Positions 6,699-13,476 of a stretch of 64,000 nucleotides of DNA are shown here, piece after piece. The stretch comes from Podarcis liolepis (Eukaryota). The stretch lies in assembly GCA_965112155.1 (NCBI GenBank), contig OZ218102.1; one strand, 5' to 3'. The notes below the pieces were generated by a model, which was given only the letters and a program-made list of their open reading frames with translations, made no database searches and was not told where the DNA came from. A program made the position numbers and the translations under genes. Numbering within the stretch: the stretch's first letter is position 1; every line of letters starts with the position of its first letter.

Positions 6699-6769
<71 letters not shown>
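6699..6769. repeat. (AT)n tract at the left junction of the Penelope complex
   Basis: Direct; one AA interruption at 6707-6708. Confidence 0.95.
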
Positions 6770-6772
<3 letters not shown>

Positions 6773-7714
6773 TTCGTAGATTTTCACGGGTACAGGAATG
6801 CAGGTTTTGGTGTCCTCGGGTGTCTTCCCGTGTAAAAGTTGGGGTGTCTAGGCGACGTTTCGACGAGGTCTCACTCGTCATCTTCAGGCTGGTGCTTTCG
6901 GCTTCTTGTTACTGGAACAGAGCGGGATCTCAGTGTTTGAGTTCCTATAAATACTGTAGAGGGGTGTGGTGTATTGCCTCAAAAGTTCTGGGCAGAGGGG
7001 AAGTTCCCAGGCTAGTGTTCTTTTCTTCTTTTGTTCCTTAATTACTTGAGGGATATCTTGAGTGATTTCTTGAGTGATATTCTGAGTACCACTTAGGTGG
7101 GTCATTAGGTGTGGATTAGTTGCTAAAGCCTTCGTGTCTTGACCTCTTGAATTTGTGAAGAGTTTTTCTGGGAAGATGGCTGTACTGCACTTAGTTGTGC
7201 TCTGGCTTGGCTTCGTGTATAGGGGCGAGCTGTGGTTTTGTGCCCTGTGCCAGCCAGATCTGTGTAGGGATTGCAGGGGGGTGCAGCATCCGGAGGTGCC
7301 ACTATGGTTTGGTTACTGGATGGTGTCTGTAATTTATCTGTGGAGAGGGTCTGGGTTTGGGTCTGGTGTGGTTGATTGGTGGTGGCGTTCTGTGTGCCTC
7401 TGGATCTGGTGTCGGTTTTTGTGGGGAGGGCTAATTTCCAGATGTCTGGCAGGCGGGACGTGTCGTCACGCTTGTTCATGTTGTGAGGGTGTTTCTCTAT
7501 CTCGATGGCTTCCATGATTATTCTCTTGTGGTGATGTTCCATGTTAAAGAGCAATTTGGAATCTGCAAAATTAATTTCGTGTCCTGTTTCTTTCATGTGT
7601 TGGAAAAGAGAGGAAGATTTTTCTTCTTTTTTGACGGCATTCTTGTGTTCTGCGATACGTGCATTTATTCGTCTGTTTGTTTGTCCAATGTACGTGGCTG
7701 GGCAGACTTTGCAG
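6770..7714 (-). mobile_element. Penelope-like (Poseidon-type) arm A: 3' fragment, subvariant 1, with 30-nt tail (6770-6799)
   Basis: Near-exact reverse complement of ~8148-9062 plus the tail ATTCCTGTACCCGTGAAAATCTACGAAAAC. Encodes the GIY-YIG region from the YIG motif onward (ORF 7123-7596). Confidence 0.93.
6852..6890 (-). ncRNA. Minimal type I hammerhead ribozyme-like motif (arm A)
   Basis: Reverse complement reads CUGAAGA-U-GACGAG(UGAGAC)CUCGUC-GAAA-CG-UC. Confidence 0.75.
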
Positions 7715-7715
7715 A

Positions 7716-9062
7716 CTCCCTAGGACACACTATCTACCGGAAAAAAACACACACCAACCGCTACTTACATGCTCAATCACACCACCACCCTGCACAAATA
7801 AACTCCGTAGCCAAGACCCTCATCTCCAGAACCAAACGCCTGGCTGACAAAGACCACTTGACAACTGAGTTACAGAATCTCTCAAATGTGTTAATCGCCA
7901 ATGGATACCAGCAAAACAGGGTTACGAAGCTAATCCAAAAAGAAACACCCCCCAAAAACCAAGACACAGAAGAAAACAATGGCATGGCCCTCCTTCCTTA
8001 TATCAAGGGCACTACAGATAAAATTAGCAAAATCCTCCATAAACACAATATCAAAACAGCCTTTTGCACCAACCAAAAAATAGCCAATATCCTCAGAAAC
8101 CCCAAAGATAAAATCCAGTTGGAAAACCAAGGGATCTATGAAATACCCTGCAAAGTCTGCCCAGCCACGTACATTGGACAAACAAACAGACGAATAAATG
8201 CACGTATCGCAGAACACAAGAATGCCGTCAAAAAAGAAGAAAAAACTTCCTCTCTTTTCCAACACATGAAAGAAACAGGACACGAAATTAATTTTGCAGA
8301 TTCCAAATTGCTCTTTAACATGGAACATCACCACAAGAGAATAATCATGGAAGCCATCGAGATAGAGAAACACCCTCACAACATGAACAAGCGTGACGAC
8401 ACGTCCCGCCTGCCAGACATCTGGAAATTAGCCCTCCCCACAAAAACCGACACCAGATCCAGAGGCACACAGAACGCCACCACCAATCAACCACACCAGA
8501 CCCAAACCCAGACCCTCTCCACAGATAAATTACAGACACCATCCAGTAACCAAACCATAGTGGCACCTCCGGATGCTGCACCCCCCTGCAATCCCTACAC
8601 AGATCTGGCTGGCACAGGGCACAAAACCACAGCTCGCCCCTATACACGAAGCCAAGCCAGAGCACAACTAAGTGCAGTACAGCCATCTTCCCAGAAAAAC
8701 TCTTCACAAATTCAAGAGGTCAAGACACGAAGGCTTTAGCAACTAATCCACACCTAATGACCCACCTAAGTGGTACTCAGAATATCACTCAAGAAATCAC
8801 TCAAGATATCCCTCAAGTAATTAAGGAACAAAAGAAGAAAAGAACACTAGCCTGGGAACTTCCCCTCTGCCCAGAACTTTTGAGGCAATACACCACACCC
8901 CTCTACAGTATTTATAGGAACTCAAACACTGAGATCCCGCTCTGTTCCAGTAACAAGAAGCCGAAAGCACCAGCCTGAAGATGACGAGTGAGACCTCGTC
9001 GAAACGTCGCCTAGACACCCCAACTTTTACACGGGAAGACACCCGAGGACACCAAAACCTGC
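7716..9062 (+). mobile_element. Penelope-like arm B: 5'-truncated, subvariant 1, no tail; encodes RT thumb + GIY-YIG endonuclease (stop at 8739)
   Basis: YRKKTHTNRYL..SHHHP, LPYIKG..KISKIL, GIYEIPCKVCPATYIGQT, RIAEH and EAIEI..NMNKRD motifs. Ends at ...CAAAACCTGC. Confidence 0.93.
8972..9010 (+). ncRNA. Minimal type I hammerhead ribozyme-like motif (arm B)
   Basis: CTGAAGA core, 6-bp stem II GACGAG/CTCGTC, GAAA, palindromic ACGT stem III, predicted cleavage after C9008. Stem I has only ~2 bp. Confidence 0.75.
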
Positions 9063-9084
9063 ATATATATATATATATATATAT
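9063..9084. repeat. (AT)11 spacer between the 3' ends of the two Penelope insertions
   Basis: CCTGC(AT)11GCAGG, direct. Confidence 0.97.
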
Positions 9085-9136
9085 GCAGGTTTTGGTGTCT
9101 TCGGGTGTCTTCCCGTGTAAGAGTTGGGGTGTCTAG

Positions 9137-9175
9137 GCGACGTTTCGACGAGGTCTCACTCGTCATCTTCAGGCT
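9137..9175 (-). ncRNA. Minimal type I hammerhead ribozyme-like motif (arm C)
   Basis: Identical motif on the minus strand. Confidence 0.75.
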
Positions 9176-11857
9176 GGTGCTTTCGGCTTCTTGTTACTGG
9201 AACAGAGCAGGATCTCAGTGTTTGAGTTCCTATAAATACTGTTGAGGGGGTGTGGTGTATAGCCTCAAACGTTCTGGGCAGAGAGGAAGTTCCCAGGTTA
9301 GTGTGCCTTTTCTTCTTTTGTTCCTTAATTACTTGAGGGATATCTTGAGTGATTTCTTGAGTGATATTCTGAGTACCACTTAGGTGGGTCATTAGGTGTG
9401 GATTAGTTGCTAAAGCTTTCGTGTCTTGACCTCTTGAGCTTGTGAAGAGTTTTTCTGAGAAGATGGCTGTACTGCACTTAGTTGTGCTCTGGCTTGGCTT
9501 CGTGTATAGGGGCGAGCTGTGGTTTTGTGCCCTGTGCCAGCCAGATCTGTGTAGGGATTGCAGGGGGGGTGCAGCATCTGGAGGTGCCACTATGGTTTGG
9601 CTACTGGATGGTGTCTGTAATTTATCTGTGGAGAGGGTCTGGGTTTGGGTCTGGTGTGGTTGATTGGTGATGGCGTTCTGTGTGCCTCTGGTTCTGGTGT
9701 CGGTTTTTGTGGGGAGGGCTAATTTCCAGATGTCTGGCAGGCGGGACGTGTCGTCACGCTTGTTCATGTTGTGAGGGTGTTTCTCTATCTCGATGGCTTC
9801 CATGATTATTCTCTTGTGGTGATGTTCCATGTTAAAGAGCAATTTGGAATCTGCAAAATTAATTTCGTGTCCTGTTTCTTTCATGTGTTGGAAAAGAGAG
9901 GAAGTTTTTTCTTCTTTTTTGACGGCATTCTTGTGTTCTGCGATACGTGCATTTATTCGTCTGTTTGTTTGTCCAATGTACGTGGCTGGGCAGACTTTGC
10001 AGGGTATTTCATAGACCCCTTGGTTTTCCAACTGGATTTTATCTTTGGGGTTTCTGAGGATATTGGCTATTTTTTGGTTGGTGCAAAAGGCTGTTTTGAT
10101 ATTGTGTTTATGGAGGATTTTGCTAATTTTATCTGTAGTGCCCTTGATATAAGGAAGGAGGGCCATGCCATTGTTTTCTTCTGTGTCTTGGTTTTTGGGG
10201 GGTGTTTCTTTTTGGATTAGCTTCGTAACCCTGTTTTGCTGGTATCCATTGGCGATTAACACATTTGAGAGATTCTGTAACTCAGTTGTCAAGTGGTCTT
10301 TGTCAGCCAGGCGTTTGGTTCTGGAGATGAGAGTCTTGGCTACGGAGTTTATTTGTGCAGGGTGGTGGTGTGATTGTGCATGTAAGTAGCGGTTGGTATG
10401 GGTTTTTTTCCGGTAGATAGTGTGTCCTAGGGAGCCATCAGGTTTTTTGTAGATTAGGACGTCAAGGAAGGGAAGTTGGTTGTTGGCTTCTATTTCCATA
10501 GTGAATTGTATTTTGGGGTGTAGGCTGTTGAGATGTGTGAGGAAGCTATCTAGTTTTTCTTTCCCATGTGGCCAAATTACAAAGGTGTCGTCAACATATC
10601 TGAGCCAAAGTTTGGGTTTGTGTTCTGACTTGTCTAAAGCATTGGTTTCAAAGTGTTCCATGTACAAATTTGCGATGACCGGTGAGAGGGGTGATCCCAT
10701 AGGTGCTCCTTCTATCTGTTTGTATCTTTGTCCATTGTGGATGAAGTACGTGTTGGTTAGGCAGTGGTTGGTCAGGTCCAGGATGTATTCGGGGGGATTG
10801 TATTTGTTTTGAATGGCTGTCAAGGCTTCATTAATGGGCACTTGTGTGAAGAGAGATACAACATCGAAGCTCACAAGTAGGTCATCGGGATGTAGGTTTT
10901 GCTTCTTTATTGTTTCTATGAACTGGAAGGAGTTTGTAACGTGTGAAGCGATGGATTCTGCATAGGGCTGAAGTTGCTTAGCGAGAAATTTAGCGAGATT
11001 TTGTAGAGGTGAGCCTATGGAGCTGACTATTGGTCTGAGTGGTGTTCCTTCTTTGTGTATCTTGGGGAGACCGTAGAGTTTGGGGCATCTGGATGATTTT
11101 TCTCTGGGGATGATTCTTAGCTGGATTTCTTCACTGATAGGAGAGGCTTTTATTTTGGATTTGGTGGTTTTTTTCCAGATAGGTGGTGGGATCTGTTTTT
11201 ATAGGTTGGTAGGTAGGGTCTTGGAGTAGATTTGATAGTTTTGCTTGGTAGTCCGATGTGTTCATCACAACAGTGGCATTACCTTTGTCTGCTGGGAGAA
11301 TGATTATGTTGTTGTCTTTCCTCAGGTTGGTGAGTGCTTTCTGTTCTTCTTTGTGTAAATTGCTTCTGGGTGGTTTGCTGGAGCAGAGGATGTTGGTGAC
11401 TTCAAGTCTGATTTTATTGGCTTCATCTGGGTTGATTTTGGTTAGGCTAGCTTCGACTCCGCATATGATGTTTTCCGTGGGGATGCGTCTCGGGGCGACT
11501 GCAAAGTTGAAACCTTTGGAGAGTACTTTGGTTTCAGTTGAGGTGAGGATCCTGTCTGATATGTTATGTACTGTTTGTTTCATGGGTTGTTGTGGAGGGT
11601 GGCTGGGCTTCTGGCGTTTCTCTAGTTTGTGGAGTTTGTTGGTGTGTCTGTCTGTCTTATGTGAGGTCTCAGTTTCAGCTCTCCAGACGGCTAGTTGTTT
11701 GCATTTGTCCCAGAGTGCAGGGTGGATTTTGTTACAGAGTTTGAGGTGAAGAGTGAGCAGATCTTTGTTGGTTTGGTTTAGTAGGTATCTTTTCTTATGT
11801 ATTTCGTTTCTGATTAGGGATAGTTCAGTTCGTTTCAGGATCCTTTCGGTAGCTGGT
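9156..11857 (-). pseudogene. Penelope/Poseidon pol (RT + GIY-YIG endonuclease), N-terminally truncated, two +1 homopolymer frameshifts
   Basis: Removing one T from T7 at 11168-11174 joins ORF 11131-11904 (PADKGNATVVM) to LYGLPKIHK..PLRPIVS, SFDVVSLFT, GAPMGSPLSPVIANLYM, RYVDD, PFLDV and GVYEIPC..YIGQT. G7 at 9563-9569 (6 in the other arms) shifts the C-terminus to ...QPEDDE. There is no Zn-finger linker between RT and EN, consistent with Poseidon rather than Neptune. Confidence 0.92.
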
Positions 11858-11970
11858 AACTTTGGCTCAGATATGTTGACGACACCTTTGTAATTTGGCC
11901 ACACGGGAAAGAAAAACTAGATAGCTTCCTCACACATCTCAACAGCCTACACCCCAAAATACAATTCACT

Positions 11971-13059
11971 ATGGAAATAGAAGCCAACAACCAACTTCCC
12001 TTCCTTGACGTCCTAATCTACAAAAAACCTGATGGCTCCCTAGGACACACTATCTACTGGAAAAAAACCCATACCAACCGCTACTTACATGCACAATCAC
12101 ACCACCACCCTGCACAAATAAACTCCGTAGCCAAGACTCTCATCTCCAGAACCAAACGCCTGGCTGACAAAGACCACTTGACAACTGAGTTACAGAATCT
12201 CTCAAATGTGTTAATCGCCAATGGATACCAGCAAAACAGGGTTACGAAGCTAATCCAAAAAGAAACACCCCCCAAAAACCAAGACACAGAAGAAAACAAT
12301 GGCATGGCCCTCCTTCCTTATATCAAGGGCACTACAGATAAAATTAGCAAAATCCTCCATAAACACAATATCAAAACAGCCTTTTGCACCAACCAAAAAA
12401 TAGCCAATATCCTCAGAAACCCCAAAGATAAAATCCAGTTGGAAAACCAAGGGGTCTATGAAATACCCTGCAAAGTCTGCCCAGCCACGTACATTGGACA
12501 AACAAACAGACGAATAAATGCACGTATCGCAGAACACAAGAATGCCGTCAAAAAAGAAGAAAAAACTTCCTCTCTTTTCCAACACATGAAAGAAACAGGA
12601 CACGAAATTAATTTTGCAGATTCCAAATTGCTCTTTAACATGGAACATCACCACAAGAGAATAATCATGGAAGCCATCGAGATAGAGAAACACCCTCACA
12701 ACATGAACAAGCGTGACGACACGTCCCGCCTGCCAGACATCTGGAAATTAGCCCTCCCCACAAAAACCGACACCAGAACCAGAGGCACACAGAACGCCAT
12801 CACCAATCAACCACACCAGACCCAAACCCAGACCCTCTCCACAGATAAATTACAGACACCATCCAGTAGCCAAACCATAGTGGCACCTCCAGATGCTGCA
12901 CCCCCCTGCAATCCCTACACAGATCTGGCTGGCACAGGGCACAAAACCACAGCTCGCCCCTATACACGAAGCCAAGCCAGAGCACAACTAAGTGCAGTAC
13001 AGCCATCTTCTCAGAAAAACTCTTCACAAGCTCAAGAGGTCAAGACACGAAAGCTTTAG
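11971..13059 (+). CDS. Open 362-aa truncated Penelope ORF (RT C-terminal part + intact GIY-YIG endonuclease)
   Basis: Uninterrupted ATG-initiated ORF with PFLDV, thumb and GVY..YIG motifs. It lacks the YVDD catalytic motif, which lies upstream of the ATG. Expression is unknown. Confidence 0.5.
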   Translation: MEIEANNQLPFLDVLIYKKPDGSLGHTIYWKKTHTNRYLHAQSHHHPAQINSVAKTLISRTKRLADKDHLTTELQNLSNVLIANGYQQNRVTKLIQKETPPKNQDTEENNGMALLPYIKGTTDKISKILHKHNIKTAFCTNQKIANILRNPKDKIQLENQGVYEIPCKVCPATYIGQTNRRINARIAEHKNAVKKEEKTSSLFQHMKETGHEINFADSKLLFNMEHHHKRIIMEAIEIEKHPHNMNKRDDTSRLPDIWKLALPTKTDTRTRGTQNAITNQPHQTQTQTLSTDKLQTPSSSQTIVAPPDAAPPCNPYTDLAGTGHKTTARPYTRSQARAQLSAVQPSSQKNSSQAQEVKTRKL

Positions 13060-13293
13060 CAACTAATCCACACCTAATGACCCACCTAAGTGGTACTCAG
13101 AATATCACTCAAGAAATCACTCAAGATATCCCTCAAGTAATTAAGGAACAAAAGAAGAAAAGGCACACTAACCTGGGAACTTCCTCTCTGCCCAGAACGT
13201 TTGAGGCTATACACCACACCCCCTCAACAGTATTTATAGGAACTCAAACACTGAGATCCTGCTCTGTTCCAGTAACAAGAAGCCGAAAGCACC

Positions 13294-13332
13294 AGCCTGA
13301 AGATGACGAGTGAGACCTCGTCGAAACGTCGC
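13294..13332 (+). ncRNA. Minimal type I hammerhead ribozyme-like motif (arm D)
   Basis: Identical motif; predicted cleavage after C13330. Confidence 0.75.
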
Positions 13333-13412
13333 CTAGACACCCCAACTCTTACACGGGAAGACACCCGAAGACACCAAAACCTGCATTCCTGTACCCGTGA
13401 AAATCTACGAAA

Positions 13413-13414
<2 letters not shown>

Positions 13415-13476
<62 letters not shown>
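13415..13476. repeat. (AT)31 tract at the right junction of the Penelope complex
   Basis: Direct. Confidence 0.97.

Follow-up and report, generated by a model that had tools for sequence, protein, structure and literature searches.

A probable pair of double-armed Penelope-like element insertions in one (AT)n tract of Podarcis liolepis

Penelope-like elements (PLEs) characteristically carry a tail on only one of their two inverted pseudo-long terminal repeats (pLTRs) (PMC3846280, PMC8557442), and an insertion bias of PLEs towards (TA)n or microsatellites was noted by Craig et al. The closest biochemically studied system is PAc, the Anolis PLE protein purified by Frangieh et al. (2024), which cleaves and extends both target strands, prefers AT-rich DNA, and begins reverse transcription at two adjacent RNA-internal sites that bound the genomic tail (~nt 85-119 after the AUG) (PMC11167929). 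The PAc start codon lies at the start of hammerhead stem II, with a predicted ribozyme cut after nt 29; in vitro, neither start site was strand-preferred, and coupling of the two start sites was neither seen nor tested in that work (PMC11167929). Here we describe a PLE locus at positions 6770-13414 of a 64,000-nt stretch (the window) of Podarcis liolepis contig OZ218102.1 (assembly GCA_965112155.1), where four element arms, A to D, form two inverted pairs. We consider it likely that the locus records two separate recent PLE retrotranspositions into one pre-existing (AT)n microsatellite, each involving two target-primed complementary DNAs (cDNAs) joined head-to-head.

The layout, obtained by direct reading, a repeat finder, pairwise BLAST of the arms and a four-way arm alignment, confirms the order A(-) B(+) (AT)11 C(-) D(+) given in the original prediction. 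The left target tract, (AT)31 (6708-6769), is followed by arm A (6770-7714, minus strand), the shorter arm of event 1, which is 945 nt long, tailed and 5'-truncated in the GIY-YIG region; its 30-nt tail (6770-6799, minus strand) corresponds to open reading frame (ORF) nt +83 to +112, adjoins the (AT)n and matches the tail pattern exactly. A single base, a, at 7715, which matches neither arm when the sequence is read against arms C and D, forms the head-to-head joint with arm B (7716-9062, plus strand). Arm B is 1347 nt long and untailed, and contains an open ORF piece up to a stop codon at 8737-8739, then a 241-nt untranslated region (UTR, part of the pLTR) and the hammerhead motif, and ends 82 nt into the next ORF. 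The central (AT)11 (9063-9084) lies between the two untailed 3' ends. Arm C (9085-11856, minus strand), the longer arm of event 2, is 2772 nt long, untailed, and encodes reverse transcriptase (RT) and GIY-YIG sequences. Again a single base matching neither arm, t at 11857, makes the joint with arm D (11858-13414, plus strand), the shorter arm of event 2, which is 1557 nt long, begins just before the RT YVDD motif, has an ORF that stays open up to a stop codon at 13057-13059 and ends in a 30-nt tail (13385-13414, plus strand). The right target tract, (AT)31, occupies 13415-13476; the three AT tracts and the bases at 7715 and 11857 are given no strand. The region has no N letters, the 64-kb window has no further copies of the family besides arms A-D, and no direct pLTR or tandem unit is present at the locus, both arms of each event being simple 5'-truncated copies.

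Arm B, the (AT)11 and arm C (7716-10434) together make a 2.7-kb palindrome (98%) with a 22-bp AT centre, a structure that may be unstable. The palindrome and the (AT)n also give a string of false matches to microRNA precursors in an Rfam E-value scan.

The two arms within each pair are nearly identical. A and B differ at one of 917 sites (99.89% identity, pairwise BLAST), C and D at two of 1526 (99.80%) and also by a single additional homopolymer G at 9569; arms of different events share 97.7-98.15% identity. In the region common to all arms, the four-way alignment holds 21 sites (19 substitutions and 2 indels) that split the arms AB|CD, among them all four diagnostic variants named in the original prediction; it holds no site that splits them AC|BD or AD|BC, and changes private to one arm number only two (A at 7617 and C at 9569). 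Because of this 21:0 split, and because divergence is 2% between pairs versus 0.1-0.2% within them, the sequence comparison supports two source variants with a common origin within each pair, and A/B and C/D as two separate events, as the original prediction of two events from two master variants had it. Four independent single-arm insertions were rejected, since the variants sort the arms perfectly into pairs, and at each head-to-head joint a single base separates the two members. Gene conversion appears unlikely as the cause of the likeness within pairs, since B and C, the closest inverted pair at a distance of 22 bp, keep their 2% divergence. The same figures bear on two single-origin histories, in which a single double-armed insertion underwent inverted duplication about the AT tract, followed by internal deletions and gene conversion, or all four arms arrived in one concerted event from two RNAs. 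The outward direction of both tails and the equal length of the two outer (AT)31 tracts are what such histories would suggest; however, the pairs differ in their internal junctions and arm lengths, A and D differ at 18 sites in addition to gaps, and B and C have not been homogenised, making either history very unlikely.

The 3' ends of the arms fall at two fixed points. B and C end in CCTGC at ORF position +82, and A and D end exactly 30 nt further on, at +112, so that in both events the longer arm stops at the upstream point and the shorter inverted arm at the downstream point, exactly as had been predicted. The 15-mer at the 3' end occurs exactly 4 times in the window, versus 0.21 expected by chance, and the 30-nt tail exactly 2 times, versus 0 expected; the untailed boundary is ambiguous by 2 nt, since tail and target both begin with AT. 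Every arm runs through the ORF end and the 241-nt UTR into the first 82 or 112 nt of an ORF, a structure of copies made from longer-than-unit (tandem or pLTR) templates. The tail is in frame with this next ORF and is itself open, and the ORF must extend beyond it. Both events thus show the inverted 5'-truncated copy and the 30-40-bp tail at one end only by which the signature is defined in the literature. In both, the tailed arm is also the shorter (945 versus 1347 nt, and 1557 versus 2772 nt). Finding one tailed and one untailed arm with the tailed arm shorter, twice over, would be expected in ~1 of 16 cases by chance were ends and lengths independent of each other; the two events of this one locus do not suffice to prove a pairing rule, and describing the repeated asymmetry as a natural replicate, as was done at first, overstates its statistical weight.

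Judged from its motifs and matches, the element is a PLE of the Penelope/Poseidon clade with RT and GIY-YIG endonuclease, an assignment based on an RVT_1 match, the GIY-YIG motif, the protein matches and a hammerhead motif holding the start codon. Arm C matches RVT_1 with E=2.5e-11, and the PLE type of the RT is indicated by its homologues, 1316 in number, of which those that bear names are PLE-like lizard and insect proteins. The best protein match is the uncharacterised Podarcis muralis LOC144326219 (98% identity). PLE proteins of Anolis carolinensis are ~48% identical to that of the element, and the family is therefore distinct from Poseidon_Ac. These protein matches also point to a lacertid lizard as the probable host. 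The GIY-YIG motif, GVYEIPCKVCPATYIGQT...R...EH, is seen in arm D, its residues being invariant in the protein alignment; all long arms carry the motif, with Pfam GIY-YIG scores of 20.5-20.9 bits, just below the cut-off of 22.6. A pattern search finds four identical copies of a minimal 34-nt hammerhead motif (8975-9008 and 13297-13330 on the plus strand, 6854-6887 and 9139-9172 on the minus strand), composed of the CUGAAGA core, a 6-bp stem II and GAAACGUC with its palindromic ACGU. The start codon lies within this motif and overlaps the core (8981 in B, 13303 in D), and the predicted cut falls after nt 28. No Rfam hammerhead model gives a match at E<=1, and stem I has only ~2 bp by eye.

Arm C is 5'-truncated, its 5' break lying ~60-90 codons into the ORF by alignment to 836-aa relatives, and contigs of other copies continue beyond 11856 with different sequence. 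Its ORF is broken by two 1-nt homopolymer length changes, at 9569 and ~11168, which are absent from arm D and from other genomic copies; possible origins are true mutation, slippage of the RT and errors in the long-read consensus. In LOC144326219 the first 37 residues correspond to an antisense translation of the element RT region (window 10660-10770, plus strand), fused at residue 37 to the sense ORF, and this annotated gene is probably another head-to-head PLE copy. A predicted CACGGG/CCCGUG hairpin (13331-13414), which encloses an AC-rich stretch and the +82 site, does not reach significance in comparison with shuffled sequences (z -0.8 to -1.8), although it resembles the AC-rich stem-loop of PAc.

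The locus resembles Poseidon_Ac and its protein PAc (PMC11167929) in several respects. Both have an ORF with RT and C-terminal GIY-YIG, a start codon in stem II of a minimal hammerhead, present here as a motif, ending in GAAACGUC, and two fixed insertion ends ~30 nt apart that lie no more than ~120 nt into the next ORF unit. The tail covers nt 83-112 after the AUG here versus ~85-119 in PAc, and the untailed site lies 54 nt beyond the predicted hammerhead cut here versus 56 nt in PAc. The targets are AT-rich in both, and both strands appear usable as primers, which for PAc was seen in vitro. Unlike PAc, the element belongs to a different, ~48% identical family with a UTR of 241 nt, and each natural event pairs one start site with the other, whereas PAc showed no strand preference in vitro. 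The endonuclease-containing (EN+) PLEs (Drosophila virilis Penelope, Adineta vaga Pen2a and Naiad; PMC3846280, PMC8557442, PMC2377424) share with this locus an inverted 5'-truncated copy adjacent to the main one, a tail of 30-40 bp confined to one end, insertion into microsatellites or (TA)n, and a hammerhead in the repeat, present here as a motif. Unlike in these elements, there is no direct pLTR or tandem unit here, and two units stand 3'-to-3' across 22 bp of AT.

Each arm holds sequence that its partner lacks: only the short arm has the 30-nt tail, and only the long arm has a further 432 nt in event 1 and 1245 nt in event 2. Two RNA-templated cDNAs are therefore needed per event, which bears out the earlier proposal that each integration was built from two cDNAs. 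The 3' end of each arm adjoins target DNA, as would be expected of a target-primed junction, so that both target strands would have served as primers. Self-priming, in which a single cDNA is made per event and the second arm is copied from the first by snap-back, has been put forward as a model for palindromic PLE junctions (PMC3846280), and would account for the near-identical arms. Since the tail is missing from the long arm and the additional 432 or 1245 nt from the short arm, neither arm copies the other; moreover, the inverted junctions are asymmetric and neither contains a palindrome, leaving fold-back synthesis extremely unlikely. A tail derived from the target would revive this model, but such an origin is improbable for a tail that is in frame with the ORF and present at both events.

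In L1 twin priming, cDNA synthesis is primed from both target strands, and the two arms are copied from separate stretches of one RNA that do not overlap; the mechanism was reportedly set out by Ostertag and Kazazian in 2001. The present locus is similar in that both strands prime and that head-to-head joining of the arms, which involves little or no microhomology, produces an inversion. It differs in that each arm stems from a dedicated initiation site and the arms overlap, by 915 nt in A/B and 1527 nt in C/D. L1-type twin priming was rejected because of these overlaps, which agree with the original statement that the arms share their 3' sequence and differ in this from L1.

In the preferred reading of two target-primed cDNAs per event, the GIY-YIG endonuclease would cut both strands of the AT tract, and both exposed 3'-OH ends would prime reverse transcription of the element RNA. 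One cDNA would begin at ORF +82 and the other at +112, 30 nt downstream, both start sites lying within the beginning of the next ORF unit on a longer-than-unit transcript. Both cDNAs would halt short of the 5' end, and host repair would then join their free ends head-to-head with one unmatched base, as seen at 7715 and 11857, producing an inverted pair in which one outer end is tailed and the other is not. Two-strand cutting and priming, as well as internal initiation at two fixed sites, are suggested by analogy with PAc, and the mode in which the arms are joined is one that we infer only. Priming at two fixed RNA positions had been part of the original prediction and agrees with the two sites of PAc. 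The description of these positions as one internal and one terminal is unsupported, since both lie inside the ORF (+82 and +112) and both PAc sites are internal (PMC11167929). Presenting the mechanism as new was also an overstatement, as two-strand cleavage and extension, two RT start sites and AT-rich targets have been published for PAc.

The (AT)n adjoins all four 3' ends, and the RNA has AU directly after +82, which could point to tracts that are not target DNA and were instead added at each 3' end by the telomerase-related RT before RNA copying. We regard this as highly improbable, in view of the documented preference of PLEs for (TA)n or AT-rich targets and the cutting of AT-rich DNA by PAc. 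In addition, the 5'-truncated ends of other copies (at 8976 and 12417) are preceded by (AT)n, which fits insertion into a tract better than addition confined to 3' ends.

A more specific, tentative and rather doubtful model invokes a dimeric ribonucleoprotein acting on the same RNA, in which a leading RT would start from +82 and a trailing RT from +112, the latter never overtaking the former. This arrangement would lead to exactly one tail per event, a shorter tailed arm, and near-identical arms within an event versus 2% divergence between events; if it is true, the tailed arm should be the shorter in every double-armed copy of the family.

Comparison with read runs in the form of short contigs, through the matches listed for them, bears on the possibility that the arms are an assembly artefact, with unrelated near-identical copies or fold-back chimeric reads joined into inverted pairs. 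The family is extremely abundant, with summed word depths of ~1e5 versus ~1e2 for single joints, and identity within pairs is near 100%; assemblies are known to have difficulty with PLE structures, and no junction-spanning reads appear among the matches listed. However, the 21 variants common to the arms of one pair are absent from the neighbouring pair, the unequal arms with their different 3' ends are unlike fold-back read artefacts, and each junction is clean, with a single unmatched base. The architecture is also the published norm for PLEs, and similar head-to-head joints of other copies occur in an independent run; an artefact is therefore improbable. Head-to-head joints with unequal arms from other copies number a dozen among the matches listed, with 64 more beyond these. 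The untailed end followed by (AT)n at 13386 recurs in other copies, in at least 10 contigs of run X1, at least 2 of run X4 and at least 14 RNA reads of run X23.

The X23 RNA reads lie over all arms (window 7450-13449), mostly in sense orientation assuming a library of the usual stranded kind, which indicates transcription of the family in the same species or a related one. In a survey of PLEs on metagenome contigs, inverted repeats were found at only 9 of 80 loci, mostly breaking at contig ends; these copies are old (~90% identity) and come without a third copy to separate tail from flank. PLE contigs of loci L010, L055, L057 and L075, which come from various metagenomes, insect-associated ones among them, terminate within inverted repeats, suggesting that short-read assemblies break at PLE arms.

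Several points weigh against the reading of two double-armed insertions into one tract. Among the matches listed, no contig is shown to span the A/B, B-(AT)11-C or C/D junctions, the contigs of the family being 80-340 nt long. That the (AT)n tract existed beforehand, and in which order the events took place, we infer only. The strict pairing of one start site with the other is left unexplained by published data, as PAc acted in vitro with no strand bias in start site (PMC11167929). The equal length of the two outer AT tracts is likewise an unexplained symmetry: both have exactly 31 units, versus 11 in the centre, which may be coincidence or a hint of tract splitting or rebuilding.

The insertion signature is already described and largely explained in the literature, and the locus is a clean example of it; the original interpretation was largely right but known, apart from its unsupported terminal site. 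Current understanding is not overturned. What the locus offers is a very clean natural instance of this PLE signature, from a lizard PLE family different from the one whose biochemistry has been studied. Since the distances of the fixed ends from the hammerhead and start codon are close to those in PAc, two-site internal initiation looks conserved, by this comparison, across squamate PLE families that are ~50% diverged. Two RNA-templated cDNAs, rather than self-priming, are favoured by the sequence private to each arm; the 2013 paper (PMC3846280) had not decided between these models. The way in which start sites are paired in one event, together with its link to arm length, provides a small lead on how a dimeric PLE enzyme might coordinate two strands.

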